64,000 nt of DNA, taken from Blastocladiella emersonii ATCC 22665. Taxonomy: Eukaryota > Fungi > Blastocladiomycota. The notes under the pieces were generated by a model. It had not been told where the DNA came from, searched no databases, and was given only the letters and a program-made list of their open reading frames with translations. Shown one piece after another: positions 11,667-64,000 of the stretch. Location of the stretch: assembly GCA_025594325.1 (NCBI GenBank), contig JANHCV010000001.1:4030001-4094000 (forward strand). The letters run 5' to 3'. Positions within the stretch are counted from its first letter, which is position 1; the number at the start of each line of letters is the position of its first letter. Made by a program: the position numbers and the translations under genes.

Positions 11667-11831
11667 CGAGTCTAGTGTCAAGTGAAGGTGTTGCGTAGCG
11701 AGTCCTGGAGAGGAGCAGCGCTCATGCCGATGTCGGCGCGCTGGTCGGCACGAGCGGTGAACGCGACCGACGGCCAAGTCGAAGACGACAACGACTCCGC
11801 TCTCCTTCCCCTCAACTGATGAAGCTTCACC
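11667..11831. promoter_or_regulatory. Bidirectional promoter region between SPP2 and CHL1
   Basis: Only 165 bp separate the two divergent start codons. Both ends are conserved in the diverged copy at about 54319-54465. Confidence 0.6.
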
Positions 11832-21439: not shown

Positions 21440-21814
21440 TGGATGGGCCTCGGCTGCTGCTCATGGCAGTCTCAGCTCGCGCGCGCGCGCTACTCTTTCT
21501 GCAGCATCGGCTCGTGGCGGCGAGCCGCCGCCGTTGTCAGCGGCTGCGCGCGCGCAGTTCTTTGTGTGTGTGTGTTTAGTTCTTGTCATTGTCAATAGCA
21601 TGTTCAGTACGATCAAAGCCTCTCGTCAATGATTCAGATCCGGCGTTTGCCTCGTGCATCGATGTGCATCAATGACGGAAGCTGAAGAGCAACTGAGAGA
21701 AGGACGGCCGCCGGCCATGGACGCGTCCGAGCCCCTCGGCCGCCGGCCGCGGACGTGCTGCGATAGCATGTGACGAATGTACGTACCATCGCGCGTTCCT
21801 TATGTAGGCCTGTT

Positions 21815-21882
21815 GGCCGTTCGGCCACGCGGGAGACGATTGCGCGGTTCGTCAGGATCCCGCGAGCTGGTGAGCAAAACTG
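21815..21882 (+). pseudogene. Decayed copy of the CHL1 3' end (right direct repeat)
   Basis: Translates TIARFVRIPRAGEQNW versus CHL1 TIARFFKIPRDGEQN*. The stop is lost (TGA to TGG) and there is a 2-nt deletion. Confidence 0.85.
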
Positions 21883-21928
21883 GTACATTTTGATGATGGA
21901 GCAAACCGTGCGGGGCGAGAAAGTGGGA

Positions 21929-43889: not shown

Positions 43890-44253
43890 AACGTGAAGCG
43901 AGCCGGAGAGGTCGGCACGTTCCAGGCCACCCGTGGAAAGGGCCGTGGCGGTGGCGGATGGCGCAACGCGAAAACGTTTTGCGGCGGCGCCGCACCGCCC
44001 GCGCCAGGGACACAAAAACGTGTGCAGTCGCCTCCGGCCGAACAACCGCCGAACGCTTGTGGCGCAAGCTGAAAACGTTCGGACACGCTTCTGGCCGTGC
44101 GCTGGCGGGCTTTCGGCAGCTCGAGAACACGCGGGAAGGGAGGTCTCGAGAGCAGCTGACGCGAGCGAGCGAGGGAACGTGCACGAACGAGGTGCGGAAG
44201 CCTTCTGAATCCGCCCGCCCGTCGCAGAGCCGTTCAAACACGTTGAGCACGTT
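43890..44253. promoter_or_regulatory. Cluster of CACGTT/AACGTT sites upstream of the MFS gene
   Basis: CACGTT or its complement AACGTG at 43890, 43916, 44017, 44176, 44239 and 44248; AACGTT at 43973 and 44074. Confidence 0.5.
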
Positions 44254-44480
44254 CGCTGTGCTCGCAGGCTGCCCGCACCCGCTTCCATCACCTAGCAAAC
44301 TCGAGCGCGGAGACTATAAGTACCTCGAGCGTCCCCGCGCTCCCATCTCGCTGTTTCCCCAGGATCACCAACCATCACCCTCTGCTACGCACCGACGACG
44401 GACGACGGCCCTCGCACATCACCCTAGACCACCCGACCACCCGACCACCGACCACCAACAACTCGTACAACCTCACCAAG

Positions 44481-46043
44481 ATGGGTCTCTACGACGGCTT
44501 CTCGGCGGCCGAGAAGAAGAACCTGACGATCTACATTGGCGGCATCATGTGCTATAAGTTTGCGCTCGAGACGCTGACGGGGTGCATGTCCAACATTGTG
44601 CTCAACCGGTACAAGGTGGCGCCGGCGGCGACGTGGGGCACGGTGGTGTCGGTCAACTACGCGGCGCAGTCGATTGGGTCGCTGCTCGTGTCGCCGCTCA
44701 TCAAGCGGTGGCCGACGTCGCGCGTGCTGGCCATGTCCATCTTCCTGTTCGGCCTGCTGGTGGCGATCGTGCCCGTGCTCGAGGCGACGACGGGCGGCGG
44801 GTCGACGGGGCTCGGCAACGAGAAGACGTACAAGGCGGGCGACTGGAACCCGTTCATCGTGGCGGTGCTGTTCCCGATCGTCGGCATCTTCCACGGCATC
44901 ATCGAGCTGATCCGCCGCGTCATCCCGCGCGACATTGTCGGCTCGGACCCGTCCAAGCTCAAGCGCATGGACTCGACGGTGCACATCTTCTACGAGGTGG
45001 CCGGCACGACGGGCGCGCTGCTCTCAAAGTACTGGATCGCCTACTTCAACTACGCCTACTCGCTGGCCCTGATCCCGATCGCCTTCACGGGCGCGGCGCT
45101 CGTGTGGTCGCGCATCAAGGACGCGACGAGCGAGGCGTACGAGGGGCCCTCCAAGACCAAGCGCGTGTCGGGCAACTTCTTCTCCGAGTTCTTTGCCATC
45201 GTCAAGGCCTTCTTCTACTCGGTGTGGGTCGGCCTCAAGCTCGTGTGCTCGCACCGGTCGCTCGTGTGGCTGATCCCGGCCTACACGCTGCCGCTCGTCC
45301 TGCACCGGTACCTCGAGAACGTGCTGTTCGCGCACTACGCCAACTTTGCGCTGTCGACGGGCTCGTACCAGCAGCTGCTCGTGTCCGGGTCCAACTTTGG
45401 CGAGCTGCTCGGCGCGCTGTTCGTGCTCCTGTTCGCCGACTCGGTCAAGACGCCCATCCCGTGGCTGCGCCTCGACGCCCTGACGCTGCTCTTCGTGTGG
45501 ATCCTGCCGCTCGCGACGCCGTTTGCCAACATCGAGGGCTGGGTGTGGTTCCTCGCGGCGATCGCCGTGCCCGTGTCGTTTGGGTGGGCCGCCGGTGACG
45601 TGTCGCTGGTCGCGTACGTGCAGTCGCGCCTGGCCAAGATCGAGGACTCGGAGGCGACCGTGTCGCCGCTCGGCTCGGTCATGTCGTTCCTGTACGTGCT
45701 GTACATTATCATCTTCGCGCTCGTCAACACGGCCATCGGCAAGGTGCAGGACTCGTTTGTCGCGGACCTGCTCAAGAAGTACGGCTCGGCCAAGAAGTTC
45801 CCCGCGCTGGCCGGCCTCAAGCCGACGCAGGACGCCATGTTCTACACGGCGGGTCTGGTCATGTCGTGCGCCGGCGTGGTCGTGTTCCTGTCGACGTTCA
45901 TCCCCAAGGGCGCGTTTGCGCTCAACCCGGACACGCTCGACGACGACGAGAGCGACCGCGCCCTCGCACAGCACCTCGAGCACGACAAGGCCTCGGAGAC
46001 GGCCAAGGACCGCAAGGAGATCATCGAGGCCATGGTCGCCTAA
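44481..46043 (+). CDS. MFS-type transporter (about 11-12 TM, intronless), substrate unknown
   Basis: 520-aa single ORF with alternating hydrophobic helices and an MFS motif-A-like loop (SPLIKRWPTSRVL). Confidence 0.75.
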   Translation: MGLYDGFSAAEKKNLTIYIGGIMCYKFALETLTGCMSNIVLNRYKVAPAATWGTVVSVNYAAQSIGSLLVSPLIKRWPTSRVLAMSIFLFGLLVAIVPVLEATTGGGSTGLGNEKTYKAGDWNPFIVAVLFPIVGIFHGIIELIRRVIPRDIVGSDPSKLKRMDSTVHIFYEVAGTTGALLSKYWIAYFNYAYSLALIPIAFTGAALVWSRIKDATSEAYEGPSKTKRVSGNFFSEFFAIVKAFFYSVWVGLKLVCSHRSLVWLIPAYTLPLVLHRYLENVLFAHYANFALSTGSYQQLLVSGSNFGELLGALFVLLFADSVKTPIPWLRLDALTLLFVWILPLATPFANIEGWVWFLAAIAVPVSFGWAAGDVSLVAYVQSRLAKIEDSEATVSPLGSVMSFLYVLYIIIFALVNTAIGKVQDSFVADLLKKYGSAKKFPALAGLKPTQDAMFYTAGLVMSCAGVVVFLSTFIPKGAFALNPDTLDDDESDRALAQHLEHDKASETAKDRKEIIEAMVA

Positions 46044-46373
46044 GGTCGGTCGCCTTTTGTTCTCTGTCTCTACTGGTGTGCTCCTTCCTCTTCCCCAAAG
46101 TTTTGTGTGTGTGTCTCTCGTTGAGCCTGCGCGTGTCCCTCCGTCACGTCGCTGCTCGCGATCGTTTCTTCCCTCCACCCCTCTACCTCGCGCCCTTGAG
46201 CGCAGCGTGATTTGATACATAGACCCCCTCGTGTTTTTGCAAACGTCTTCTTCGCCTCCGTGAATCTGATGGTGTGTTGCAAGTGGCGAGCTTGGTTCTG
46301 TCATGCTCGCGATCAGGTCGCGGATCAAACAAGCCGCCTGCGAGCGCGCGCGCTCAAGAGCTGAGCGTGCAAG

Positions 46374-49300
46374 CAAGGTGTTCCTCTACGACTAGAGTTC
46401 GAGCTCGAAAGGTTGCGGGCAGTGAACGGCGGCGGGAGCACCAGGGCGAGTGCGGAAAGTGGCTCGCTCGGCTTGGGGTCACGCCGACGTGAACGACGCG
46501 ACCCTGCTGCAGGCGCACGTGACCCCGGCTTAGCCGCTTGAATTTGAGATGCACCCGAATATTTTTTTTCTGAGCATTGGATCGTCATCAGGGACCCTCA
46601 GGGACCCCGGAAATGTAAAAATCGCCGAGTCGGCATGTCGGGGTGTCGAGAAGTCGTCCGACCGTGCAAAGTTGAAAAAAACTTTCGGGTTTGGTCGTTT
46701 GGACGAACTCGGCCCGAAACGGCACTTGGGACTTGGCTTCTTGAATTGGACTATCCCTTCGATCGGGCTGATTTTGCGCACATGTACTCAGTATGTGCTA
46801 GGAGCATTATTCGCGGTGGTCTGAGAATTTCTGAGATTTATATGCACTGGGTAGACCGGTGCTCAAAGTTAAATACGCGTAAGAATTCGGCATGGTGTGG
46901 GCCACGCCGCTTTTGGGCTTCACTTCCCGGAACGCCTCACCCCACCTACATCGCACCACCACCCACACCACCACCATGACTATGCCTTGAACAGCGCAAC
47001 GCTGACTAGCTACAGATACCATTCCCCGTAATATACAGCGTTCGGTCTTCTGCCGGCCATCAGCAGTCAGTTGCTCGCCATGAGCGAACGAGCGAGCGTT
47101 GCTGGACGCCTCGTGCAACCCGTCCCGTTGATCTCGGGCCTGATGTGCAACACGCAGGCGCTGGAGCTCCGGTAAAGGACGGAACACGCGCGAACAGTGA
47201 TCAGGGTCGGGATGAACGGGCCGTCTCGCACTTGGCACGTGCGCGAAAGAAACGCGTCGACCCGCAACACGTCGTGCTCCGAGTCCGCCCGCCCGCCCGT
47301 GCCCGCACACACTCGCGCCCGATCCGATATCGCAGGTCGGCCCCATCGCGCGACGCGCGCGTCGCCCGGGCGCGTTGCTGCGCCACCATGGCCATGATCG
47401 CACGTCGTGTTCGCGCGCGCGTTGCAGAACAGTGCTTGCGCGGGCAAAAATCTCCCACGCGTTTGGGCGATCCGCTCGCAGCACAGTCACAGCGTGCGCA
47501 CGCAACCCCGGGAGTCCCCGACGGGGTCCAAAGAAAGCGACGCGGCAACTGACCGACCTGGGGCCGGGCCAACGCGTGAGTCGACCACCGTGGCGAGGCT
47601 ATGGCCGTCGTCGCCCGCCACACCGCACCAAGGTCGGAATCGACGACAAGGCATGATTGAGAGAGATGGGTTGCGGTCCGTTCTGCGCAACCTTTCGCCC
47701 TCGGGACTCGGGACAACGATATACATGGACCAATGTGATTTTGTGATCATGGACTTGGAGCAATGGATTCGCGTGATTGAGTGAGCGAGGAGCGATTCCC
47801 GACAAGATCTGCGCCGTTAGTGCATGTGGGTAGCCCTCGAGGACGACGCGTGGCCGCTCGCGCCGACCTGACCTACCGCGACGGCGCTGATCCTCGGCTC
47901 TCGGCCACGACCACGACGCGTGCTCACTTGGTGCAACCTCGCGCCCTGGCGCGTCGGCGTGGCGGGCCGGCCTGATCAGCGGGCGTACGTCTTCCCTCGG
48001 GTTTCCGCGGCGATCCGACGCACCGGCCCGAGAAGCGGCCGGATCGCCAACCAGCACGACCGTTTCCTCCTTCACACGGCGCGGTCCGGAGTTGGTCGCG
48101 GTGAGTGAAAACACCGCGGCGACGATGCGATCCACGGCCGGCCGGTCCACCACGACCATGGCCATGGCCGCGGCCACGGTGATCGGCCTCGACGCGTTGC
48201 GGCGCTCACACGGCGGCGCCCGGCCCGTCCGTTGTTCGCCATCTCGCGCGCACTCTGTGATCCGCGTGCACGTGCAGGCTGTCCCCCGAGGTCATGTGCT
48301 TCGCTGCACGACGGATTAATCGCAGCAAAACATCACGATCACGGTCGCAGGGGGGAAGGGAGACACTGTTTCCCGCCGCTTGCGGCTTGAACTGTATCCC
48401 AAACCGCTCGCCCACCATTTTTTTCACGACAACAAGGCAACTGACAGGAACATGTACCACGGGGCTGCTGGCCACTCGGCCGGCCGGGGTGCGCTGGGTG
48501 CAGGCCGGCCGGCTGTCCCCTCCCGCCCGCCCGCTCGCTCGCTGCCCCCGCGGACCCTCCGCGGCTCCTTCTCCTCGGCCGCCCCGACACCCCCAAACTG
48601 CTCCCTGTTCGAGCATAAGGATCGGATCATACTACGTATCAACAAACGCATCACCTGTCAACATGTGGAGCTCGATCTCCGCAGTGTGGACCGGTGTCAA
48701 GTCGCTCCTCGGCTTCTCGCTCCGCCCCGTCGCGGTCGAGGAGGCCGCCGCCGCCGAGACTTCGGTCGAGGCCGTGGCCGTGGCCGTCGCCGAGGAGCAG
48801 CAGCAGCAGACGTACGTTTCTCGCTTCTCGACGCCGACCCGCCCGCCCGATCCGATCCGATCACGTATAGACACGCCTTGCCCTGCTCCACCCCCACCTC
48901 TACTCTGCTCGTCCGCCCGATCATGGTGCACGGCCGCGCCGCGCTACGGCGCCCCTCCGTGCCGTCGCGCCGCCGAAGCACGGGCGGAATGCGGCGGCCG
49001 GCGGCCGGCGGCCGGCACCGCCCGATCGATATTCGGGCGGGCGCGAGCCATTGTTCGCGGCGCGCCACCCGCGCGGTGCGGCGCGACGCGTCCGCTGTGA
49101 TCGCGTCGGTTATTATTCATTATCACCTCGCCGTGTCCGCCCTCCCCTCTCCGATCCCACCGCTCCTCCGCATGAATCGCATGGCGACTGACACTTGCCG
49201 CAACGCCGACGTCATCCAGGGCTGCTGCCGAGTGCGCCGTTGAGGGCGCGTGCGGCGACCGCGAGGTCGCCGCGGTCGAGGGTGTCGCCGCCGGCGCCGA

Positions 49301-52300
49301 GGTTGCGCGCGGCGAGACCATCATCTCGGTCGAGGCCATCATGCACGGAAAGGGGCCCGTGCAGGCCGCGAGTACCGAGAGCGCCACCGAGGGCGCGTGT
49401 GGCGGTGAGTCGATTGCCGCCGTCGCGGACGTGGTCAAGGAGACGATCCCCGCCAAGGTCGTCGTCCTCGCCAAGCCCGTCGGCTCCGAGCTCCTCGTCG
49501 AGAGCTCGGCCGACGAGTCCGAGATCCAGGGCGCCACCGAGGGCGCGAGTGCTGCAGCGGCCGTCGTTGAGGCGGGCGAGGTCGCGTGCATCAACGTGGC
49601 CGTCGCCGAGGCGGACGAGGTCGCGTGCAGCAGCGTGGCCGCCGCCGAGTCCATTGCGGAGGGCTCGGCCGGCGTGCCCGTGGTCGAGCGCGCCGTTGAG
49701 GGCGCGCGTGTCGACGCCGCGGTCGCCGCCAAGGTCGTCGGCAAGAAGTCGTGCGTCACGGCGGCCGTCACCACCGAGGGCATGAGCGACGACGACCGCA
49801 AGGTCGGCGCCATCATCGTCAAGGCCCCGGCCGGCGAGACCGGCACCGAGGCCGCCATCGTGGGCTCGGGCGACACGGTCGTCGTTGCCGAGGCCGTGTG
49901 CAAGGAGGTCGACGCCGCCAAGGTCTCCCTCGCCGAGCCTGTCGATCGCGAGGCCGCCGCCACGGGCTGCTCGATCGACGACGGGTCCGCGTACCAGCGC
50001 ACCAAGGGCGCGTGCGACGCCGACGGCGACACGGTCATCTCCATGGTCGCCGCGGCCGAGGAGAAGGAGGAGCTGCAGACCACGACCCGCACCACCACGA
50101 CCCGCGTCACCGCGTGCCCGGTCAGCAGCAGCAGCAGCAGCAAGGCCGACGGCGAGATCCTCGCCAAGACGTCGGTCAACAAGGCCGCCGCTGAGGCCGC
50201 CGCTGAGGCCGCCGCTGAGGCCGCCGCTGAGGCCGCCGCTGAGGCCGCCGCTGAGGCCGCCGCTGAGGCCGCCATCAAGGAGTCGTCGTGCGGCGCGAGC
50301 ACGGCTGCGTTCACCGAGTGCGACGCCAACAACTACACGTACGGTACGGCCTCGTACGCCGCGACCACCGGCGTCATCAAGGGCACGAGCGGCAACGACA
50401 AGATCGTCAAGGTGCTGCCCGACGAGACCGTTGCGGGCGGGTGCACGACCGCACGCTCGGGCACCGAGCTCGTCATCACCAAGGGCGCGAGCGCCGCTGC
50501 CGCGGCTGCCGGCGAGAGCGAGCCGGTCGTCCTCGTCAAGTCCATCATCGTGCCCGCCGCGCACATGGCGCCGCACGCCGTCATGGAGCCGACGGCTGCC
50601 GAGAACACGATCAAGGAGAACCAAGACCAGCAGGAGCAGGCCGAGAAGGCCACCACCACCACCTTCTGCACCGTCGCCGACGCCGCCGCTCGCGACTCGG
50701 GCATCCTCGCTCCGACACCCGCCAGCTCGATGACGGTCGAGCGCGCCACCTGCACGGCGCAGCAGCAGCAGCAGCCGGGCGGGTCCTCGAGGCCGTTTGC
50801 GGGACCGTCGCGACGACCGCGGGTCCCGCGACCGATTCCGTCGCCGAGCAGCTCGAGCTGTTCCCGAACGACGCCATGGAGCGCATCGTCGACGCTGGTG
50901 TCGCCGCCCGTACCGGCCCATCCAGTGGCGGCATCGCCAATGCCGGCGTCGACATGGTCCAGCTCGTCGTGCCGACGCGCCAGGTGATCCACGAGCCCAA
51001 GGAACGCGGGTCCACCACAGCCGCCACCGACGCCGCCGCGGCCGTGGAGCTCCTGCGACGGTCTACGGACCAGCGCGAGGCCGCGAGGTACGCTTTCGAG
51101 CTATCGTGTCCCGATGCGCGATCTCCCAACACTAACGCTGGCGCGATTCGTAGAAGTCTCGAGGCCGCCAACAACATTGCCGTCGCGACCGCCTCGGCCA
51201 TGGTCGCCGCGCCGTCGCCGGCCTCCAGCGACTCGGCGCCCAGCAGCGTGCACGGCAAGCTGATCGACACGAGCGCGGCTCCCGCCGCCGCCGCCGTCAA
51301 GTTCGAGCGCACCGAGATGAGCGGCCAACCCGTCGCTTCCGCCAAAAGGCACGTATCCCTCTCTCTCTCTCGGCGGTTTGCTCCAACGGCAGTCACGCTA
51401 ACCAAACCTCGAACCCTGTGTGTAGTAGCGTCAAGCGCGTCGAGGCGGCGCAGGCCGAGTCGGACATCGGCACGCACGGCGGCGGCCACGTCGTCGGCAA
51501 GGTCGGCAAGCTCGAGCACGTCGCCGCGTCTAGCGGTGCCGCGCAGCCGCACTGCGAGATCAAGGCGCAGGGCGCCAAGCCGGCGGGCATCACGCGCCAC
51601 CAGCCCGACGACGGCGCCGTGGCCGCCGCCGCCCCTACGCCGGGCGCAGGCGCTGCGGGTGTAGGGCGGTCGCTGGCCGCCGACCCGTCGACGTCGTCGT
51701 CGTCGTCGCAGCCTGGTCTCGGCGGCAAGCACGGCCGCAAGGAGAAGAAGAAGAAGCGGTGGCCGAAAATGCCGTGGTCGAAGAGCCGCAGCGGCGCGTC
51801 TCGGGTCCACGACGACTCGACCACCGCCCGTCGCGCCTCGGCGTCGCCCTCGCCGACCTCCTCTACCTCATCCTCCTCGGCCGCGACTGGTCTCGCGGCG
51901 CGTGCGCGTCGCGCTGCGGCCAAGGTCCTCGTCGGCATCACGCACCTTTCGCGCACCTCGCGCTCTTCTCGCAGCCACGGCAACGGACCGACCGGCACCG
52001 AGGAGGACCACGCTCGTTCGTCTGGCCCGTGCCTCGAGAGCGACGCGCCTGCGCCTGCGCCTGCGCCTGCGCCTGCGCCTGCGCCTGCGCCTGCGCCTGC
52101 GCCTGCGCCTGAGCTGCCGCAGCTCCTCGCGGACCTCGTCAACGGCAGCGACAAGGGTACCATCACCCTCACGTCGGTCCTCGACCTCATGGACGAGCTC
52201 GGCGATCATCTGGCTCACGCAGCCACCACGCTTCCTGCTCGGGTCGGCTTCGCGCCGCTGGGCATCAAGGCGCAGCAGGAGATCCAGGGCGGCGGCATCG

Positions 52301-53328
52301 GGCCCGGCCGCGCCGTCCAGCACCGCGATCCGGGGTGGTACATTGAGCTTCTGCGGTTCCTCGCCAAGTACATCCCGAACACGCTCGTCGACCTGCTCGG
52401 CGTCTCCATTCGCGGCCTCTCGGCGCCCCTCATGACCGAGGCCCACGCGATCGCCCTCGGCAACGTCATGGAGAAGCACCGCGAGGCGATGGAACTTCAC
52501 GCCCGTGCCCTCAGCGACGAGCTGTGCCGCCCCGACGTGCCCGAAGCGCAAGTCCCGGCCCACTTCCCGCTCGACAGCACCAACGCTCGGCTGCGCATGC
52601 CGGCGCACATCGAGGCGCTCGACGACGAGCTCGACTGCGCGCTCCGGAAGTGCATGTCGCCGCAGACCATCGACGATCTCGGCGACTACATGTGGTACAT
52701 GCACCAACTCGCGGTGTACCTGGCCACGTACGTGCCGGGCCTCGACTCGCGCACTCCTGGGGGTATTTCGCGTGCTCTCAGGGTCGTGGCCGCGATCTCG
52801 GCCCTGCAGATGACTCGGGTCGATCCGTTCGCTGCAGTCAAGATGGACGGCGGCATCGTGGATTGCCATCTTCTCCCCGAGAGCGCCCAGTCCTGTCTTT
52901 TGTTCGCGCTGGTCCTCCTGGGCCACTGCGAGCGCACCATGGCCGTGCCGAACCGCGATCCCGCGGCGGCCACGGATTTCTTCTCTTTTGCCAACATGAT
53001 TCCCGCCATGGGCGGCGGTGCGGCCGTGCTTGGACCCTCTGCGACGTGCCCGTTCGATTGGTGATGGATGGGCCTCGGCTGCTGCTCATGGCAGTCTCAG
53101 CTCGCGCGCGCGCGCTACTCTTTCTGCAGCATCGGCTCGTGGCGGCGAGCCGCCGCCGTTGTCAGCGGCTGCGCGCGCGCAGTTCTTTGTGTGTGTGTGT
53201 TTAGTTCTTGTCATTGTCAATAGCATGTTCAGTACGATCAAAGCCTCTCGTCAATGATTCAGATCCGGCGTTTGCCTCGTGCATCGATGTGCATCAATGA
53301 CGGAAGCTGAAGAGCAACTGAGAGAAGG
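46374..53328 (+). repeat. ~6.9-kb multicopy unit, copy B
   Basis: Identity with A begins at CAAGGTGTTCCTCTACGAC (46374 vs 14761) and ends at GAGAGAAGG (53328 vs 21703). Confidence 0.95.
48663..53064 (+). CDS. Orphan multi-exon protein, copy B
   Basis: Same exon model as copy A. Differs by T>C at 50702, A>G at 50888 (I>V), silent G>A at 52545 and AP x11. Confidence 0.6.
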
Positions 53329-53506
53329 TTGGCCGCCGGCCGCGACGTGATATCATCCTTCGTACGAGTCCCTGCGAGGCCCACGATCCCGCTTTGCTCA
53401 TTGATCTTTGAGTACACGAGGATCAGTTTGGGACAAATCTAATAGTGTGTGTGCGTCGGAAAAGCCCAGATTCGCGGTAGCTCTTTCCCAATAGCGCTCG
53501 CCAATC

Positions 53507-53835
53507 GGCAACGACATGGAGATGATGCGCACGCACAGGTCTGGGCGCACCCAGACGTCGCCCGGCGAAAGAATCTACGACGACGAAGATGTGGCTTCCA
53601 CCGGGTACTCTTTCGCCTTGTCCTCGCGCTTGGTCGTTTCGGCGTCGTACTCGGCGGGTGACAGAAGCTTGAGGTCGCGCGCGTCGACCTTGACGAGGTC
53701 GCCGTTCGCCACGAGATCGACGCGCACCAGCTCCTTGTGCTGCATGAGTTCGCGCACCAAACCCAGCATCCAGGCGTGTCGCACGTGCGTGACCAGAATG
53801 AACCCGCCGCGGCCAGCATGCGCCGCGCATCGAGC
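53507..53835 (-). pseudogene. SPP2/GPKOW KOW-region fragment (diverged, with nonsense codon)
   Basis: Homologous to about 10530-10860 ([32 protein letters not shown]...). An in-frame TAG at 53575-53577 precedes ILSPGDVWVRPDL. Confidence 0.88.
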
Positions 53836-53868
53836 AAGCCAAGAGCTACGTGAAAACGCTCTTCCCAT

Positions 53869-54318
53869 GTCGATGGAAGACTGGATCGCAGCGCGGTACT
53901 GCCAGACCTGCTCCAGCTTGCGATCGCAGGCGAGCTTCGCGACGCGCTCGCGGATCCAAGCGGGTTCCGACAACAGTGACGCGTTCTCAGTGGACGCAGC
54001 AGCGGCGGTCGGAGCTGGTTCGGATCCAAGCAAGACAGCTTCGTTCACGTTGAGCGAGACGACTGGGTTGTCCAAGTTGTCGCGCAACCGAGTGAAGCTG
54101 CCACAGATGAGCGAGAGCGACTTGCCGGTGCCCGTCGGGTTCTCAATCAAGCCGACGCCGCGCTGGTCGAGGACGCGGTACAGCGTGTCCATGAGGCTGA
54201 CCTGAATCGAGTACGGCGGGAAGGAGAAGCCGTAGTCCCTTCCCGCTGGGATCACAGCCGAGGCCGCGGACGGGTCTGTTGCCGCTGCTGCTGCCAGTCC
54301 ATTCGCTTCATGGCTCAT
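53869..54318 (-). pseudogene. CHL1 5' fragment (diverged), fused in frame to the KOW fragment
   Basis: Homologous to about 11832-12278. FSFPPYSIQ and ENPTGTGKS are retained; W>R and other substitutions. Continues in frame into the KOW fragment (ORF 53575-54318). Confidence 0.9.
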
Positions 54319-54465
54319 TGTGATGCTTCATTAGTTGAGGGTGAGGGAGAGCGAGCGCAGGAACGTCGTCGCAGTCGTCGAGCTGGTCGTCGAGGTGCTT
54401 CTCGTCCGCCCTGCTCCTCCTCCCTCAGGCCGGATACGCAACACTTCCACTTGACACTAGACTCC

Positions 54466-55115
54466 ATGCAACACAGCGACACCATGCAATCTGACCGCCG
54501 CGCATCACCATCAACGGATAAGCCAACCGCGGAAGCGTCGCCGACCAAAGCGCCGCCATCCCCTTCCCGCGACGCCGCTGCGGCTCCGCCACCACCCGAA
54601 ACCGTTGTGTACGGCGAAAGCGAGTTCACCGGCGGTGACATTGCAGGCAAGTACGGCCTCCTGGTCAAGGGCAGCAAGCGGAGACGAGGCGGGGATGCTG
54701 CTGCTCTCACCGCCGAGTCGGACGCCGCGCCGAAAGAGGGTGATGGCGAGGAGCCGTACGACATCTCGACGGCACCAAGGGACGCGCCTCTGCTCACCAA
54801 GGGGCGCGGCGAGCTCGACGAGGCGATCCAGGACCTGCCCGAACACATACGATACCTGCGTCTAAACCCCGAAGCCGCTCACCGACCTCATGCTCGTCGT
54901 GTAGTGCTCGATAGAAGACTACGAGGCCAAGCCGATCGCCGACTTTAACGTCGCGGTGCTCCGCGAACGGGCTGGTCCGAGGGACGGGCGATTGGTCATA
55001 ACCAGAAGAACGTGTACGCTTTCAATCTCGTACCACCGCGGACACGCAATGCGAGACTAACCGACCTATCAATTGGCTGGTCTCGTGAGACCACACAGTA
55101 TATCCCGCGCTCAAT
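54466..55115 (+). pseudogene. SPP2/GPKOW 5' portion (exons 1-2 and start of exon 3), degenerate
   Basis: Homologous to about 11010-11666. The intron-1 donor GTACGC became ATACGA, there is a 1-nt deletion in the G-patch (CTCCGCAGCATGGGC to CTCCGCGAACGGGC), and the intron-2 acceptor AG became GG. Confidence 0.9.
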
Positions 55116-55310
55116 GCCGACGCCCACATCGACGGCAAGGCCACGGGCGCCATGTCGTACGCGCTGCTCAAGAGTCTGCGCGCCAACCCGGGCCAGTCGT
55201 ACGCGCAGCTGCTCGCGTCGACTCGCGCCATCCTGTCCAAGGAGTACTCGCAGATTCCGCAGCTCTCTTCGGGCCACGAGATCGACATGAACGCTGTGTT
55301 TGTACTCTAA
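55116..55310 (+). pseudogene. Recent copy of the last ~64 codons of MCA1
   Basis: Reverse complement of 21929-22123 (ADAHIDGKATGAM...DMNAVFVL*); no differences seen. Lacks the catalytic residues. Confidence 0.92.
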
Positions 55311-55535
55311 TCCCACTTTCTCGCCCCGCACGGTTTGCTCCATCATCAAAATGTACCAGTTTTGCTCACCAGCTCGCGGGATCCTGACGAACCGCGCAAT
55401 CGTCTCCCGCGTGGCCGAACGGCCAACAGGCCTACATAAGGAACGCGCGATGGTACGTACATTCGTCACATGCTATCGCAGCACGTCCGCGGCCGGCGGC
55501 CGAGGGGCTCGGACGCGTCCATGGCCGGCGGCCGT

Positions 55536-58500
55536 CCTTCTCTCAGTTGCTCTTCAGCTTCCGTCATTGATGCACATCGATGCACGAGGCAAACGCCGGA
55601 TCTGAATCATTGACGAGAGGCTTTGATCGTACTGAACATGCTATTGACAATGACAAGAACTAAACACACACACACAAAGAACTGCGCGCGCGCAGCCGCT
55701 GACAACGGCGGCGGCTCGCCGCCACGAGCCGATGCTGCAGAAAGAGTAGCGCGCGCGCGCGAGCTGAGACTGCCATGAGCAGCAGCCGAGGCCCATCCAT
55801 CACCAATCGAACGGGCACGTCGCAGAGGGTCCAAGCACGGCCGCACCGCCGCCCATGGCGGGAATCATGTTGGCAAAAGAGAAGAAATCCGTGGCCGCCG
55901 CGGGATCGCGGTTCGGCACGGCCATGGTGCGCTCGCAGTGGCCCAGGAGGACCAGCGCGAACAAAAGACAGGACTGGGCGCTCTCGGGGAGAAGATGGCA
56001 ATCCACGATGCCGCCGTCCATCTTGACTGCAGCGAACGGATCGACCCGAGTCATCTGCAGGGCCGAGATCGCGGCCACGACCCTGAGAGCACGCGAAATA
56101 CCCCCAGGAGTGCGCGAGTCGAGGCCCGGCACGTACGTGGCCAGGTACACCGCGAGTTGGTGCATGTACCACATGTAGTCGCCGAGATCGTCGATGGTCT
56201 GCGGCGACATGCACTTCCGGAGCGCGCAGTCGAGCTCGTCGTCGAGCGCCTCGATGTGCGCCGGCATGCGCAGCCGAGCGTTGGTGCTGTCGAGCGGGAA
56301 GTGGGCCGGGACTTGCGCCTCGGGCACGTCGGGGCGGCACAGCTCGTCGCTGAGGGCACGGGCGTGAAGTTCCATCGCCTCGCGGTGCTTCTCCATGACG
56401 TTGCCGAGGGCGATCGCGTGGGCCTCGGTCATGAGGGGCGCCGAGAGGCCGCGAATGGAGACGCCGAGCAGGTCGACGAGCGTGTTCGGGATGTACTTGG
56501 CGAGGAACCGCAGAAGCTCAATGTACCACCCCGGATCGCGGTGCTGGACGGCGCGGCCGGGCCCGATGCCGCCGCCCTGGATCTCCTGCTGCGCCTTGAT
56601 GCCCAGCGGCGCGAAGCCGACCCGAGCAGGAAGCGTGGTGGCTGCGTGAGCCAGATGATCGCCGAGCTCGTCCATGAGGTCGAGGACCGACGTGAGGGTG
56701 ATGGTACCCTTGTCGCTGCCGTTGACGAGGTCCGCGAGGAGCTGCGGCAGCTCAGGCGCAGGCGCAGGCGCAGGCGCAGGCGCAGGCGCAGGCGCAGGCG
56801 CAGGCGCAGGCGCAGGCGCAGGCGCAGGCGCGTCGCTCTCGAGGCACGGGCCAGACGAACGAGCGTGGTCCTCCTCGGTGCCGGTCGGTCCGTTGCCGTG
56901 GCTGCGAGAAGAGCGCGAGGTGCGCGAAAGGTGCGTGATGCCGACGAGGACCTTGGCCGCAGCGCGACGCGCACGCGCCGCGAGACCAGTCGCGGCCGAG
57001 GAGGATGAGGTAGAGGAGGTCGGCGAGGGCGACGCCGAGGCGCGACGGGCGGTGGTCGAGTCGTCGTGGACCCGAGACGCGCCGCTGCGGCTCTTCGACC
57101 ACGGCATTTTCGGCCACCGCTTCTTCTTCTTCTCCTTGCGGCCGTGCTTGCCGCCGAGACCAGGCTGCGACGACGACGACGACGTCGACGGGTCGGCGGC
57201 CAGCGACCGCCCTACACCCGCAGCGCCTGCGCCCGGCGTAGGGGCGGCGGCGGCCACGGCGCCGTCGTCGGGCTGGTGGCGCGTGATGCCCGCCGGCTTG
57301 GCGCCCTGCGCCTTGATCTCGCAGTGCGGCTGCGCGGCACCGCTAGACGCGGCGACGTGCTCGAGCTTGCCGACCTTGCCGACGACGTGGCCGCCGCCGT
57401 GCGTGCCGATGTCCGACTCGGCCTGCGCCGCCTCGACGCGCTTGACGCTACTACACACAGGGTTCGAGGTTTGGTTAGCGTGACTGCCGTTGGAGCAAAC
57501 CGCCGAGAGAGAGAGAGGGATACGTGCCTTTTGGCGGAAGCGACGGGTTGGCCGCTCATCTCGGTGCGCTCGAACTTGACGGCGGCGGCGGCGGGAGCCG
57601 CGCTCGTGTCGATCAGCTTGCCGTGCACGCTGCTGGGCGCCGAGTCGCTGGAGGCCGGCGACGGCGCGGCGACCATGGCCGAGGCGGTCGCGACGGCAAT
57701 GTTGTTGGCGGCCTCGAGACTTCTACGAATCGCGCCAGCGTTAGTGTTGGGAGATCGCGCATCGGGACACGATAGCTCGAAAGCGTACCTCGCGGCCTCG
57801 CGCTGGTCCGTAGACCGTCGCAGGAGCTCCACGGCCGCGGCGGCGTCGGTGGCGGCTGTGGTGGACCCGCGTTCCTTGGGCTCGTGGATCACCTGGCGCG
57901 TCGGCACGACGAGCTGGACCATGTCGACGCCGGCATTGGCGATGCCGCCACTGGATGGGCCGGTACGGGCGGCGACACCAGCGTCGACGATGCGCTCCAT
58001 GGCGTCGTTCGGGAACAGCTCGAGCTGCTCGGCGACGGAATCGGTCGCGGGACCCGCGGTCGTCGCGACGGTCCCGCAAACGGCCTCGAGGACCCGCCCG
58101 GCTGCTGCTGCTGCTGCGCCGTGCAGGTGGCGCGCTCGACCGTCATCGAGCTGGCGGGTGTCGGAGCGAGGATGCCCGAGTCGCGAGCGGCGGCGTCGGC
58201 GACGGTGCAGAAGGTGGTGGTGGTGGCCTTCTCGGCCTGCTCCTGCTGGTCTTGGTTCTCCTTGATCGTGTTCTCGGCAGCCGTCGGCTCCATGACGGCG
58301 TGCGGCGCCATGTGCGCGGCGGGCACGATGATGGACTTGACGAGGACGACCGGCTCGCTCTCGCCGGCAGCCGCGGCAGCGGCGCTCGCGCCCTTGGTGA
58401 TGACGAGCTCGGTGCCCGAGCGTGCGGTCGTGCACCCGCCCGCAACGGTCTCGTCGGGCAGCACCTTGACGATCTTGTCGTTGCCGCTCGTGCCCTTGAT

Positions 58501-61500
58501 GACGCCGGTGGTCGCGGCGTACGAGGCCGTACCGTACGTGTAGTTGTTGGCGTCGCACTCGGTGAACGCAGCCGTGCTCGCGCCGCACGACGACTCCTTG
58601 ATGGCGGCCTCAGCGGCGGCCTCAGCGGCGGCCTCAGCGGCGGCCTCAGCGGCGGCCTTGTTGACCGACGTCTTGGCGAGGATCTCGCCGTCGGCCTTGC
58701 TGCTGCTGCTGCTGCTGACCGGGCACGCGGTGACGCGGGTCGTGGTGGTGCGGGTCGTGGTCTGCAGCTCCTCCTTCTCCTCGGCCGCGGCGACCATGGA
58801 GATGACCGTGTCGCCGTCGGCGTCGCACGCGCCCTTGGTGCGCTGGTACGCGGACCCGTCGTCGATCGAGCAGCCCGTGGCGGCGGCCTCGCGATCGACA
58901 GGCTCGGCGAGGGAGACCTTGGCGGCGTCGACCTCCTTGCACACGGCCTCGGCAACGACGACCGTGTCGCCCGAGCCCACGATGGCGGCCTCGGTGCCGG
59001 TCTCGCCGGCCGGGGCCTTGACGATGATGGCGCCGACCTTGCGGTCGTCGTCGCTCATGCCCTCGGTGGTGACGGCCGCCGTGACGCACGACTTCTTGCC
59101 GACGACCTTGGCGGCGACCGCGGCGTCGACACGCGCGCCCTCAACGGCGCGCTCGACCACGGGCACGCCGGCCGAGCCCTCCGCAATGGACTCGGCGGCG
59201 GCCACGCTGCTGCACGCGACCTCGTCCGCCTCGGCGACGGCCACGTTGATGCACGCGACCTCGCCCGCCTCAACGACGGCCGCTGCAGCACTCGCGCCCT
59301 CGGTGGCGCCCTGGATCTCGGACTCGTCGGCCGAGCTCTCGACGAGGAGCTCGGAGCCGACGGGCTTGGCGAGGACGACGACCTTGGCGGGGATCGTCTC
59401 CTTGACCACGTCCGCGACGGCGGCAATCGACTCACCGCCACACGCGCCCTCGGTGGCGCTCTCGGTACTCGCGGCCTGCACGGGCCCCTTTCCGTGCATG
59501 ATGGCCTCGACCGAGATGATGGTCTCGCCGCGCGCAACCTCGGCGCCGGCGGCGACACCCTCGACCGCGGCGACCTCGCGGTCGCCGCACGCGCCCTCAA
59601 CGGCGCACTCGGCAGCAGCCCTGGATGACGTCGGCGTTGCGGCAAGTGTCAGTCGCCATGCGATTCATGCGGAGGAGCGGTGGGATCGGAGAGGGGAGGG
59701 CGGACACGGCGAGGTGATAATGAATAATAACCGACGCGATCACAGCGGACGCGTCGCGCCGCACCGCGCGGGTGGCGCGCCGCGAACAATGGCTCGCGCC
59801 CGCCCGAATATCGATCGGGCGGTGCCGGCCGCCGGCCGCCGGCCGCCGCATTCCGCCCGTGCTTCGGCGGCGCGACGGCACGGAGGGGCGCCGTAGCGCG
59901 GCGCGGCCGTGCACCATGATCGGGCGGACGAGCAGAGTAGAGGTGGGGGTGGAGCAGGGCAAGGCGTGTCTATACGTGATCGGATCGGATCGGGCGGGCG
60001 GGTCGGCGTCGAGAAGCGAGAAACGTACGTCTGCTGCTGCTGCTCCTCGGCGACGGCCACGGCCACGGCCTCGACCGAAGTCTCGGCGGCGGCGGCCTCC
60101 TCGACCGCGACGGGGCGGAGCGAGAAGCCGAGGAGCGACTTGACACCGGTCCACACTGCGGAGATCGAGCTCCACATGTTGACAGGTGATGCGTTTGTTG
60201 ATACGTAGTATGATCCGATCCTTATGCTCGAACAGGGAGCAGTTTGGGGGTGTCGGGGCGGCCGAGGAGAAGGAGCCGCGGAGGGTCCGCGGGGGCAGCG
60301 AGCGAGCGGGCGGGCGGGAGGGGACAGCCGGCCGGCCTGCACCCAGCGCACCCCGGCCGGCCGAGTGGCCAGCAGCCCCGTGGTACATGTTCCTGTCAGT
60401 TGCCTTGTTGTCGTGAAAAAAATGGTGGGCGAGCGGTTTGGGATACAGTTCAAGCCGCAAGCGGCGGGAAACAGTGTCTCCCTTCCCCCCTGCGACCGTG
60501 ATCGTGATGTTTTGCTGCGATTAATCCGTCGTGCAGCGAAGCACATGACCTCGGGGGACAGCCTGCACGTGCACGCGGATCACAGAGTGCGCGCGAGATG
60601 GCGAACAACGGACGGGCCGGGCGCCGCCGTGTGAGCGCCGCAACGCGTCGAGGCCGATCACCGTGGCCGCGGCCATGGCCATGGTCGTGGTGGACCGGCC
60701 GGCCGTGGATCGCATCGTCGCCGCGGTGTTTTCACTCACCGCGACCAACTCCGGACCGCGCCGTGTGAAGGAGGAAACGGTCGTGCTGGTTGGCGATCCG
60801 GCCGCTTCTCGGGCCGGTGCGTCGGATCGCCGCGGAAACCCGAGGGAAGACGTACGCCCGCTGATCAGGCCGGCCCGCCACGCCGACGCGCCAGGGCGCG
60901 AGGTTGCACCAAGTGAGCACGCGTCGTGGTCGTGGCCGAGAGCCGAGGATCAGCGCCGTCGCGGTAGGTCAGGTCGGCGCGAGCGGCCACGCGTCGTCCT
61001 CGAGGGCTACCCACATGCACTAACGGCGCAGATCTTGTCGGGAATCGCTCCTCGCTCACTCAATCACGCGAATCCATTGCTCCAAGTCCATGATCACAAA
61101 ATCACATTGGTCCATGTATATCGTTGTCCCGAGTCCCGAGGGCGAAAGGTTGCGCAGAACGGACCGCAACCCATCTCTCTCAATCATGCCTTGTCGTCGA
61201 TTCCGACCTTGGTGCGGTGTGGCGGGCGACGACGGCCATAGCCTCGCCACGGTGGTCGACTCACGCGTTGGCCCGGCCCCAGGTCGGTCAGTTGCCGCGT
61301 CGCTTTCTTTGGACCCCGTCGGGGACTCCCGGGGTTGCGTGCGCACGCTGTGACTGTGCTGCGAGCGGATCGCCCAAACGCGTGGGAGATTTTTGCCCGC
61401 GCAAGCACTGTTCTGCAACGCGCGCGCGAACACGACGTGCGATCATGGCCATGGTGGCGCAGCAACGCGCCCGGGCGACGCGCGCGTCGCGCGATGGGGC

Positions 61501-62466
61501 CGACCTGCGATATCGGATCGGGCGCGAGTGTGTGCGGGCACGGGCGGGCGGGCGGACTCGGAGCACGACGTGTTGCGGGTCGACGCGTTTCTTTCGCGCA
61601 CGTGCCAAGTGCGAGACGGCCCGTTCATCCCGACCCTGATCACTGTTCGCGCGTGTTCCGTCCTTTACCGGAGCTCCAGCGCCTGCGTGTTGCACATCAG
61701 GCCCGAGATCAACGGGACGGGTTGCACGAGGCGTCCAGCAACGCTCGCTCGTTCGCTCATGGCGAGCAACTGACTGCTGATGGCCGGCAGAAGACCGAAC
61801 GCTGTATATTACGGGGAATGGTATCTGTAGCTAGTCAGCGTTGCGCTGTTCAAGGCATAGTCATGGTGGTGGTGTGGGTGGTGGTGCGATGTAGGTGGGG
61901 TGAGGCGTTCCGGGAAGTGAAGCCCAAAAGCGGCGTGGCCCACACCATGCCGAATTCTTACGCGTATTTAACTTTGAGCACCGGTCTACCCAGTGCATAT
62001 AAATCTCAGAAATTCTCAGACCACCGCGAATAATGCTCCTAGCACATACTGAGTACATGTGCGCAAAATCAGCCCGATCGAAGGGATAGTCCAATTCAAG
62101 AAGCCAAGTCCCAAGTGCCGTTTCGGGCCGAGTTCGTCCAAACGACCAAACCCGAAAGTTTTTTTCAACTTTGCACGGTCGGACGACTTCTCGACACCCC
62201 GACATGCCGACTCGGCGATTTTTACATTTCCGGGGTCCCTGAGGGTCCCTGATGACGATCCAATGCTCAGAAAAAAAATATTCGGGTGCATCTCAAATTC
62301 AAGCGGCTAAGCCGGGGTCACGTGCGCCTGCAGCAGGGTCGCGTCGTTCACGTCGGCGTGACCCCAAGCCGAGCGAGCCACTTTCCGCACTCGCCCTGGT
62401 GCTCCCGCCGCCGTTCACTGCCCGCAACCTTTCGAGCTCGAACTCTAGTCGTAGAGGAACACCTTG
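55536..62466 (-). repeat. ~6.9-kb multicopy unit, copy C (inverted), extended by 420 bp of A right flank (55116-55535 = 21704-22123)
   Basis: Reverse-complement identity with A (inner coordinate sum 77239) and with B. Confidence 0.95.
55800..60177 (-). CDS. Orphan multi-exon protein, copy C
   Basis: Same model, with AAAE x4 and AP x13. Shares the GGC and I>V variants with B; lacks the B-specific silent SNP. Confidence 0.6.
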
Positions 62467-62796
62467 CTTGCACGCTCAGCTCTTGAGCGCGCGCGCTCGC
62501 AGGCGGCTTGTTTGATCCGCGACCTGATCGCGAGCATGACAGAACCAAGCTCGCCACTTGCAACACACCATCAGATTCACGGAGGCGAAGAAGACGTTTG
62601 CAAAAACACGAGGGGGTCTATGTATCAAATCACGCTGCGCTCAAGGGCGCGAGGTAGAGGGGTGGAGGGAAGAAACGATCGCGAGCAGCGACGTGACGGA
62701 GGGACACGCGCAGGCTCAACGAGAGACACACACACAAAACTTTGGGGAAGAGGAAGGAGCACACCAGTAGAGACAGAGAACAAAAGGCGACCGACC

Positions 62797-64000
62797 TTAG
62801 GCGACCATGGCCTCGATGATCTCCTTGCGGTCCTTGGCCGTCTCCGAGGCCTTGTCGTGCTCGAGGTGCTGTGCGAGGGCGCGGTCGCTCTCGTCGTCGT
62901 CGAGCGTGTCCGGGTTGAGCGCAAACGCGCCCTTGGGGATGAACGTCGACAGGAACACGACCACGCCGGCGCACGACATGACCAGACCCGCCGTGTAGAA
63001 CATGGCGTCCTGCGTCGGCTTGAGGCCGGCCAGCGCGGGGAACTTCTTGGCCGAGCCGTACTTCTTGAGCAGGTCCGCGACAAACGAGTCCTGCACCTTG
63101 CCGATGGCCGTGTTGACGAGCGCGAAGATGATAATGTACAGCACGTACAGGAACGACATGACCGAGCCGAGCGGCGACACGGTCGCCTCCGAGTCCTCGA
63201 TCTTGGCCAGGCGCGACTGCACGTACGCGACCAGCGACACGTCACCGGCGGCCCACCCAAACGACACGGGCACGGCGATCGCCGCGAGGAACCACACCCA
63301 GCCCTCGATGTTGGCAAACGGCGTCGCGAGCGGCAGGATCCACACGAAGAGCAGCGTCAGGGCGTCGAGGCGCAGCCACGGGATGGGCGTCTTGACCGAG
63401 TCGGCGAACAGGAGCACGAACAGCGCGCCGAGCAGCTCGCCAAAGTTGGACCCGGACACGAGCAGCTGCTGGTACGAGCCCGTCGACAGCGCAAAGTTGG
63501 CGTAGTGCGCGAACAGCACGTTCTCGAGGTACCGGTGCAGGACGAGCGGCAGCGTGTAGGCCGGGATCAGCCACACGAGCGACCGGTGCGAGCACACGAG
63601 CTTGAGGCCGACCCACACCGAGTAGAAGAAGGCCTTGACGATGGCAAAGAACTCGGAGAAGAAGTTGCCCGACACGCGCTTGGTCTTGGAGGGCCCCTCG
63701 TACGCCTCGCTCGTCGCGTCCTTGATGCGCGACCACACGAGCGCCGCGCCCGTGAAGGCGATCGGGATCAGGGCCAGCGAGTAGGCGTAGTTGAAGTAGG
63801 CGATCCAGTACTTTGAGAGCAGCGCGCCCGTCGTGCCGGCCACCTCGTAGAAGATGTGCACCGTCGAGTCCATGCGCTTGAGCTTGGACGGGTCCGAGCC
63901 GACAATGTCGCGCGGGATGACGCGGCGGATCAGCTCGATGATGCCGTGGAAGATGCCGACGATCGGGAACAGCACCGCCACGATGAACGGGTTCCAGTCG
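62797..64000 (-). CDS. Second copy of the MFS transporter; 5' end beyond the window edge
   Basis: Translation matches the C-terminal ~400 aa of 44481-46043 with no differences seen. Confidence 0.85.
   Translation of the reverse strand, partial: DWNPFIVAVLFPIVGIFHGIIELIRRVIPRDIVGSDPSKLKRMDSTVHIFYEVAGTTGALLSKYWIAYFNYAYSLALIPIAFTGAALVWSRIKDATSEAYEGPSKTKRVSGNFFSEFFAIVKAFFYSVWVGLKLVCSHRSLVWLIPAYTLPLVLHRYLENVLFAHYANFALSTGSYQQLLVSGSNFGELLGALFVLLFADSVKTPIPWLRLDALTLLFVWILPLATPFANIEGWVWFLAAIAVPVSFGWAAGDVSLVAYVQSRLAKIEDSEATVSPLGSVMSFLYVLYIIIFALVNTAIGKVQDSFVADLLKKYGSAKKFPALAGLKPTQDAMFYTAGLVMSCAGVVVFLSTFIPKGAFALNPDTLDDDESDRALAQHLEHDKASETAKDRKEIIEAMVA

Follow-up and report, generated by a model that had tools for sequence, protein, structure and literature searches.

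A layered 20.2-kb palindrome in Blastocladiella emersonii, probably built on an older inverted MFS gene pair

The closest described counterparts of the locus reported here are the palindromes of primate sex chromosomes (P1-P8 on the Y and 26 on the human X), whose gene-carrying arms, at least 8 kb long and more than 99% identical, face each other across a unique spacer. Jackson et al. (2021) recognised such palindromes by arms of at least 8 kb, arm identity of at least 99% and a unique spacer, the arms having been kept or made identical by arm-to-arm copying (PMC8327919). In these structures, arm identity is younger than the palindrome itself and rearrangement clusters at the centre of symmetry (PMC8327919, PMC8600007). 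Two further classes are relevant. Fold-back (hairpin-primed) inverted duplications follow a double-strand break, show a short inverted match at the spacer edge (PMC10622511) and are terminal, losing distal DNA or giving dicentrics. The ODIRA triplications of yeast comprise three copies, one of them inverted, with junctions at short repeats (PMC4689423, PMC10766183); they are contiguous, in forward-inverted-forward order, and arise in one event.

We analysed a window of 64,000 nt from B. emersonii ATCC 22665, to which all positions refer unless prefixed C1 (the contig). Repeat finding and BLAST over the window and 20 kb downstream delimited two reverse-complementary arms, bounded at both ends (44304-53341 and 55523-64535; outermost limits 44304 on the left and 64535, i.e. 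C1:4094535, on the right), in a structure of 20.2 kb in total:

44304 to 53341, forward strand: left arm, 9,038 bp, with a core at 44334-53328 that is perfect apart from the differences given below
53342 to 55522, no strand: spacer, 2,181 bp, asymmetric
55523 to 64000 within the window, reverse strand: right arm, whose last 535 bp, up to 64535 (C1:4094535), lie outside the window
44481 to 46043, forward strand: left MFS transporter gene, an intronless open reading frame of 520 aa
62797 to 64359, reverse strand: right MFS transporter gene, identical to the left one, its start codon lying past the window end

A first-pass annotation of the window had claimed a giant palindrome with arms of at least 8.5 kb around a non-symmetric spacer of about 2.2 kb, each arm holding the MFS gene and an orphan unit. 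All of this was borne out: the arms measure 9.0 kb, the two MFS genes are identical and intact, and the repeated unit is present in three copies. The limits of 44840 and 64000 given at the time reflected the window end only, and the outer arm ends were found once the sequence was extended downstream. Arm against arm, BLAST gave 99.35% identity over 9,050 columns (10 mismatches, 3 gaps), an inverted match of 9 kb that far exceeds chance.

With arms of 9,038 and 9,013 bp, 99.35% identity including indels, a unique, non-palindromic centre of 2,181 bp devoid of internal symmetry, and diverged homology beyond the outer arm ends (see below) that marks the arms as made identical by arm-to-arm copying, the Blastocladiella palindrome belongs to an already known kind of structure, and the analogy with Y-chromosome palindromes drawn at first reading holds. 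As in primates, the structure predates the identity of its arms. Unlike the primate palindromes, this one belongs to a zoosporic fungus, is surrounded by ordinary housekeeping genes and has arms of only 9 kb, along which a 7-kb insertion has visibly spread from arm to arm with a microhomology end.

The published genome of the strain was assembled from PacBio HiFi reads (mean length 10.5 kb) with LJA into 21 contigs with an N50 of 2.02 Mb (PMC9730499), and the statistics of the assembly used here agree with it. The palindrome is interior to a contig of 5.14 Mb, whose end is 1 Mb away, and lies between SPT16 and FAD-oxidoreductase genes on one side and a B-family DNA polymerase gene on the other; this position between housekeeping genes in a HiFi assembly makes a fold-back artefact unlikely. 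It should be considered that a span of 50 kb with three near-identical copies of 7 kb is difficult to assemble, that the MFS protein was found on a single NCBI contig only, namely this one (protein cluster listing), and hence in one assembly, and that such palindromes are unusually many in this genome, all of which could point to a fold-back or chimeric join or to a mis-resolved three-copy repeat. Nevertheless, an assembly artefact of this sort is very improbable, since unique genes flank both sides in the contig interior, a missing-adapter read cannot yield a 2.2-kb asymmetric spacer, the SNP and the repeat counts are arm-specific, and the longest variant-free stretch (about 5.9 kb) is shorter than the mean HiFi read. 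Given the contig-interior position, the asymmetric spacer, the arm-specific variants and the HiFi assembly, the palindrome, known from one assembly, is very probably a true chromosomal structure.

Within the core, the arms differ by one SNP and two indels, of 36 bp at 50182 (three 12-mers) and of 12 bp at 52044 (two 6-mers), and by nothing else, exactly the two repeat counts and single substitution reported at first reading:

50182 to 50273, forward strand: 12-mer microsatellite, with 7.7 copies in both the left arm and copy A and 4.7 in the right arm (58603-58658)
52045 to 52111, forward strand: 6-mer microsatellite, 11.2 copies in the left arm, 13.2 in the right arm (56753-56831), 9.2 in copy A
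52545, forward strand: sole arm-to-arm SNP, adenine here against 56319 in the right arm; private to the left arm, copy A agreeing with the right arm

The third copy of the repeated unit, a 7-kb block that BLAST located upstream of the palindrome as well as in each arm, made these differences polarisable. Private SNPs numbered 2 in copy A, 1 in the left arm and 0 in the right arm, and the right arm had lost three 12-mers, a private change owing to which it cannot be regarded as a frozen parent. The copies and the longest coding-like frame of the block are as follows:

14760 to 22123, forward strand: copy A, the source, in its ancestral setting, with CHL1 on one side and a complete metacaspase gene on the other
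46373 to 53341, forward strand: copy B, in the left arm, its inner end shortened relative to A and C
55116 to 62467, reverse strand: copy C, in the right arm, including a 407-bp piece of A flank (55116-55522) that lies in the spacer
51154 to 53061, forward strand: "orphan" open frame, with no family match; mirror at 55803-57722, reverse strand

Copy A is the source of the block. The right arm continues colinearly with copy A for 407 bp more than the left arm does, and this piece brings the 3' end (the last 190 nt) of the metacaspase gene, which is complete only beside copy A. The left context of copy A, running from the 3' end of CHL1 into the block, is common to an older paralogous locus (C1:3497942-3502770, 84-95% identity). 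Copies A and C are 100% identical to the final base at both junctions, indicating a new insertion rather than a conversion tract. As read from the sequences, the order of copying is thus from A to the right arm and from there to the left arm. Comparison of the block with its older paralogue revealed no codon periodicity, Atlas yielded no usable match for the orphan frame, Pfam found no domain in any long open reading frame of the block or the spacer, and Rfam and tRNA scans of the arm were empty. We rejected the idea that the 7-kb block is a transposable element, as its ends vary between copies, it carries pieces of neighbouring genes and its long frames have no Pfam match.

The spacer consists of three fragments, two of them old and one young, and of 150 bp for which no source was found; the same 2-kb centre holds both old and young copies of DNA from the neighbourhood of copy A:

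53329 to 53341, forward strand: inner junction, the end of the left arm, with imperfect microhomology (13/15 nt) that includes GGCCGCCGGCC
53492 to 53835, forward strand: old GPKOW/SPP2-like fragment, about 82% identical to its source at 10517-10861
53848 to 55109, reverse strand: old fragment, about 82% identical to the reverse complement of 11009-12299, containing the GPKOW 5' end, the shared promoter and the CHL1 5' end
53575 to 54318, reverse strand: intact chimeric open reading frame of 247 aa, the CHL1 N-terminus with its Walker A motif joined in frame to the KOW segment of GPKOW

No source was found for bases 53342-53491, and the old fragments showed no RIP-like mutation bias. At the inner boundary, the short inverted match (53329-53341 against 55523-55535, 13/15 nt) was not followed inward by significant homology, the alignment score being reached in 118 of 500 shuffles. 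A site-specific invertible segment of the FLP or invertase type was rejected, no recombinase domain having been found in the open reading frames of the arm, spacer or flanks.

The outer boundary behaved differently from the inner one. There, near-identity grades into in-register homology of about 65% over about 190 bp:

44150 to 44333, forward strand: left outer flank, about 65% identical, in register, to the right flank at 64506-64690, with a TATA-like MFS-promoter motif common to both flanks

The local alignment of the two flanks scored 25, against 10.1 ± 1.5 for shuffled sequences, none of 500 of which reached 25 (z about 10). The homology is no dispersed repeat, and the upstream sequence of the flanks is absent from the paralogous MFS genes, both at 2.78 Mb and on C18. 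A sequence search of the PDB for the closest solved structure of the MFS protein gave no match. Because this diverged homology lies in register past the outer boundary, the structure predates the arm divergence, and at least one event of arm-to-arm copying has taken place in it; conversion may well have recurred. The diverged edge suggests, on sequence comparison, that an older inverted MFS pair preceded the near-identical arms and was later re-homogenised. Its age can be read only roughly, the old homology being short (about 190 bp) and promoter constraint being able to slow its decay.

These edges bear on two other histories. In the first, a single recent de novo inverted duplication, the whole 9-kb right arm would have been copied, by two replication template switches, into a site previously without an MFS gene. 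An arm divergence of about 1 in 9,000, an inner junction with microhomology only, and the fact that template switching is documented in yeast as giving rise to inverted copy-number variants (PMC10766183, PMC11790251) are consistent with it, but it leaves the 65%-identical outer homology without explanation, and we therefore regard it as improbable. In the second, copy A and both arms would all be old and kept identical by continuous three-way gene conversion, which would fit the older paralogous block at 3.50 Mb and the old pieces of copy A's neighbourhood in the spacer. Conversion tracts, however, depend on homologous anchors and would be expected to have diverged margins, which were seen only at the outer MFS edge: no diverged homology was found past the A/B, A/C or inner B edges, which were accordingly rejected as tract ends, the inner edge of copy B has no significant diverged homology beyond it, and A and C are 100% identical to the last base at both junctions. 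Such continuous conversion is decidedly unlikely.

We consider it probable, instead, that the palindrome is layered, an old inverted MFS pair having received the block from copy A in its right arm before its left arm was overwritten. In the oldest stage, two MFS transporter genes would have stood opposite each other around a centre in which the decayed GPKOW and CHL1 fragments from 33 kb upstream were already present. Recently, a 7.4-kb stretch of copy A would have been copied just downstream of the right MFS gene, joined at both junctions non-homologously or by microhomology and dragging along the last 190 nt of the adjoining metacaspase gene. Later still, in one long copying event, the right arm would have overwritten the left, anchored outside in the old MFS homology, proceeding inward across the MFS gene and the new block and finally joining the spacer through microhomology. 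This could have happened by break-induced replication, by conversion over a long tract, or by fold-back priming that began at the short inverted match and was completed by capture in the MFS gene; the end product is compatible alike with break-induced replication, fold-back priming or two template switches. The outcome would be two identical MFS genes with upstream regions that are alike up to about -150 and different in the more distal promoter, three block copies and a 2.2-kb centre. Mutual correction of the arms would be expected to continue, and recombination between them could invert the centre.

The first-pass annotation had further called the locus a real amplicon. That the structure is real is very probable, as argued above; a fresh fold-back amplicon is not supported, given the unique housekeeping genes kept on both sides, the older diverged outer homology and the arrival of the block from copy A. 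The imperfect 13/15-nt inverted match at the spacer edge might correspond to the short inverted match of fold-back duplications, but the outer end of the structure lies within older homology and both unique flanks are kept; a fold-back terminal inverted duplication was rejected on account of these unique genes, the 1 Mb of contig beyond and the retained distal sequence. The locus resembles ODIRA triplications in having three copies, one inverted, with junctions at short repeats; however, the order here is forward, forward, inverted (A, B, C), A and B are 24 kb apart, and the copies differ in ends and ages, so that an ODIRA inverted triplication was rejected as well.

The palindrome constitutes a dated, directional example, in which a third copy and dragged gene fragments reveal which copy came first and a 7-kb novelty moved from arm to arm by copying with one homologous and one microhomology end. 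Taken with the genome's other palindromes, it suggests that mirror duplication and arm-to-arm copying are a major recent route of gene duplication in this early-diverging fungus, with consequences for gene counts (MFS transporters, metacaspases, kinases), read mapping and knockout work in an optogenetic model. Neither these palindromes nor such a route is discussed in the genome paper (PMC9730499).

Near the start of the block lies a dispersed element that also occurs elsewhere in the genome:

46473 to 46890, forward strand: 420-bp dispersed, AT-richer element containing a hairpin; mirrored at 61950-62367 and present in copy A at about 14860-15277

Identical inverted pairs include 12 of its 32 copies (6 of about 26 loci), whereas the roughly 110 kinase genes include a single inverted pair (about 1-2%), an enrichment that we treat as a lead. 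In every pair, a duplication boundary falls within 1.2 kb of the element (within 3 bp on C18), although the other loci were viewed over ± 1.5 kb only, which biases this distance count, and the element lies 100 bp away from the A-to-right-arm junction. The duplications could have been driven by an element that is mobile or prone to breakage, either this one or the 7-kb block, but this is decidedly unlikely: the ends differ among the three block copies, which carry neighbour-gene pieces, the block has no transposase or other Pfam domain, the 420-bp element lacks visible terminal inverted repeats or target duplications, and in the 20-kb palindrome its distances to the outer and inner boundaries are 2.2 kb and 6.5 kb. 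A lineage-specific tendency to form and retain near-identical gene-bearing palindromes, with the element marking or promoting break points, is a speculative extension that we hold to be doubtful.

A second MFS palindrome (C1:2774686-2778303 / 2782828-2786445) likewise carries a paralogous MFS gene (90% aa identity) followed by the same 420-bp element. The MFS 3' flanks of the two palindromes have no homology to each other, and the second differs in lacking the 7-kb block, in its unrelated 4.5-kb spacer and in arms that reach 0.9 kb upstream of the MFS gene; these arms, 3.6 kb long, are likewise near-identical (99.9-100%).

A repeat search of positions 40000-64000 returned three collinear inverted blocks of 5,398, 1,940 and 1,297 nt with 99-100% complementarity, the right one ending merely at the window end. 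After 20 kb of downstream sequence had been added, comparison of the region with itself by BLAST set the limits of the palindrome at 44304-53341 versus 64535-55523 (99.35% over 9,050 columns), with arms of 9.0 kb around a spacer of 2,181 bp and a total of 20.2 kb. The first-pass annotation had described the palindrome correctly but gave its arms as at least 8.5 kb; extension of the contig, the check it proposed for the outer arm ends, now bounds them at 44304 (left) and 64535 (right). Inside 44334-53328, base-by-base alignment revealed only three differences between the arms, the same two repeat counts and one SNP seen at first reading:

Arm difference 1: 36-bp indel, three units of a 12-mer
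Arm difference 2: 12-bp indel, two units of a 6-mer
Arm difference 3: one SNP, 52545/56319

The palindrome is real and of a known kind. Working criteria for large palindromes in primate sex chromosomes are arms of at least 8 kb with at least 99% identity (PMC8327919), and the Blastocladiella palindrome falls within both. The assembly used here comprises 32.65 Mb in 21 contigs with about 65% G+C (contig C1, 5,142,960 bp; contig C18, 2,021,495 bp), and the window corresponds to C1:4030001-4094000. The published assembly of ATCC 22665 (21 contigs, N50 2.02 Mb, 34.27 Mb) was made by the La Jolla Assembler from PacBio HiFi reads averaging 10.5 kb (PMC9730499), and the string 'palindrom' is absent from the text of that paper. 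It is very improbable that the structure arose during assembly, as it lies interior to the contig between unique flanks, a 2.2-kb asymmetric spacer is impossible from a missing-adapter read, each arm has its own specific variants, and the longest variant-free stretch is about 5.9 kb, against the 10.5 kb of the mean read. The flanking genes are single-copy housekeeping genes: SPT16 and a FAD-binding oxidoreductase on the left, and a B-family DNA polymerase with a polymerase-delta-type zinc finger on the right. Terminal fold-back duplication was discarded, both flanks being retained.

Each arm encodes an identical, intronless 520-aa ORF (44481-46043; mirror 62797-64359) with about ten strongly hydrophobic segments, which matched Pfam MFS_1 weakly (31.5 bits, below the cut-off of 33.4) and resembled eukaryotic MFS clusters in Atlas with a very high score (0.99); the protein is recorded on no NCBI contig but this one. 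In each arm the MFS gene is followed downstream by a 7-kb block, whose long ORFs gave no match in family searches. Comparison of the block with an older paralogue (window 48850-51863 versus locus L011) revealed no codon or three-base periodicity of substitutions (17/19/14, 28/35/40 and 25/21/22 by codon position), so that protein-coding constraint on the 'orphan gene', its longest coding-like open frame, is not demonstrated; indel lengths were mostly multiples of three. Part of the block (window 47631-48560) has a 90%-identical counterpart of 0.9 kb on contig C11 (955446-956378).

A history legible in unusual detail gives the palindrome a moderate interest. Its two edges differ in nature. At the outer edge, near-identity fades within 30 bp and is followed by about 190 bp of in-register similarity, in a region with a TATA-like motif common to both sides:

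44150-44333 versus 64506-64690: old outer-edge homology, about 65% identity

The local score of this alignment was 25, a value reached by 0 of 500 shuffles (10.1 ± 1.5), and its JC distance about 0.48. Sequence upstream of the paralogous MFS genes at 2.78 Mb and on contig C18 did not align to this stretch, and no further genomic copy was found at the sensitivity of the genome search used. Taken together, these observations argue that the inverted pairing of the two MFS genes long predates the near-identity seen today; arm identity younger than the structure is likewise a feature of primate sex-chromosome palindromes. Past the inner edge (53341) no homology was detected (118 of 500 shuffles reached the score), and the inner join is a 13/15-nt match containing the 11-mer GGCCGCCGGCC. 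One homologous end and one microhomology end would be the trace expected from a one-ended copying event. This could have been break-induced replication starting in the MFS homology, running inward and closed by a microhomology join, or else fold-back priming at this short inverted match with subsequent capture in MFS.

BLAST located three copies of the 7-kb block:

14760-22123, plus strand: copy A, outside the palindrome
46373-53341, plus strand: copy B, left arm
55116-62467, minus strand: copy C, right arm

At its outer end, C has 2,069 bp (the MFS gene) in common with B, and at its inner end 407 bp in common with A (55116-55522 is the reverse complement of 21717-22123, 100%), while B breaks off at 53341, midway through sequence unbroken in A and C. 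These 407 bp include the final ~190 nt of a metacaspase gene; its Peptidase_C14 domain is entire next to A alone (21968-22975), so that C carries a dragged-along metacaspase fragment. The identity of A and C is exact as far as the terminal base on either side, with a 4-bp duplication at one junction, a few bases of microhomology at the other and no diverged homology found past either end. At an older paralogous locus (C1:3497942-3502770), sequence collinear with A runs from the CHL1 3' half directly into the block with 93-84% identity; the left context of A is ancestral. Private SNPs numbered two in A, one in B and none in C. The only simple order of copying is A to C to B. In order, spacing and end points the copies do not conform to an ODIRA triplication, which was therefore excluded (PMC4689423, PMC10766183).

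In A's orientation, the right arm runs 14760..22123 and then 11009..12299, and the 3.50-Mb locus has a similar circularly permuted order; both would fit a tandem or circular intermediate and hint at one. That locus (C1:3497942-3504485; L011, L014) consists of the CHL1 3' half, a shorter block lacking an equivalent of window 46766-48849, and a fragment spanning CHL1 promoter and 5'-end sequence. A ~79-bp direct repeat of the CHL1 3' end (~84% identity) brackets A (14538-14616 and 21806-21882), with a further copy in the spacer (55348-55424).

The spacer is a composite, with no source detectable by sequence search for 53342-53491:

53492-53835: copy of part of a GPKOW/SPP2-like gene, source 10517-10861, 82% identity
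53848-55109: reverse-complement copy of the GPKOW 5' end, shared promoter and CHL1 5' end, source 11009-12299, 82% identity
55116-55522: young metacaspase piece

The old fragments have a symmetric substitution spectrum and no RIP-like bias. Both contribute to an intact predicted ORF of 247 aa (53575-54318, minus strand), in which the CHL1 N-terminus with Walker A (77% aa identity) is joined in frame to the GPKOW KOW segment (81%); pairwise against the parents, dN/dS was 0.28-0.34 and dS 0.36-0.49. Ahead of the ORF lies the old duplicate of the promoter shared by GPKOW and CHL1. As in primate sex-chromosome palindromes, change clusters around the centre of symmetry. In the latter, recombination between arms commonly inverts the spacer (PMC8327919), and for Blastocladiella such inversion is no more than an expectation. 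A recombinase-driven invertible segment and a transposon were both rejected, a defining feature failing in each case.

A dispersed element, AT-richer than the genome and with a conserved internal hairpin, lies 100 bp inside the block:

46473-46890, mirror 61950-62367, in A ~14860-15277: 420-bp element (genomic loci L021-L047)

It gave no Rfam or tRNA match and has no visible terminal repeats. Twelve of its ~32 copies form six inverted pairs, 100% identical (one 99.8%), and, as viewed within ±1.5 kb of each locus, a duplication boundary lies at most 1.2 kb from the element in every pair (on C18, 3 bp from its 5' end). Because of this limited view, the tie between element and palindrome boundaries is a lead, not a result. 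A second MFS palindrome (C1:2774686-2778303/2782828-2786445; L012, L015) has 3.6-kb arms of 99.9-100% identity, in which the MFS gene is followed by the same element, and a 4.5-kb spacer; its MFS shares 90% aa identity with that of the 20.2-kb palindrome, and four of the five intact copies of this subfamily are in palindromes. Gene-family searches also returned three equal-score inverted pairs spaced 28-118 kb, two of metacaspase genes (C1:1779892/1854871 and C11:2279110/2397213) and one among ~110 kinase genes (C16:548357/577148), and an equal-score direct pair, 72 kb apart, at C17:1970791/2042549. Such pairs suggest that the genome contains many further large duplications of recent date.
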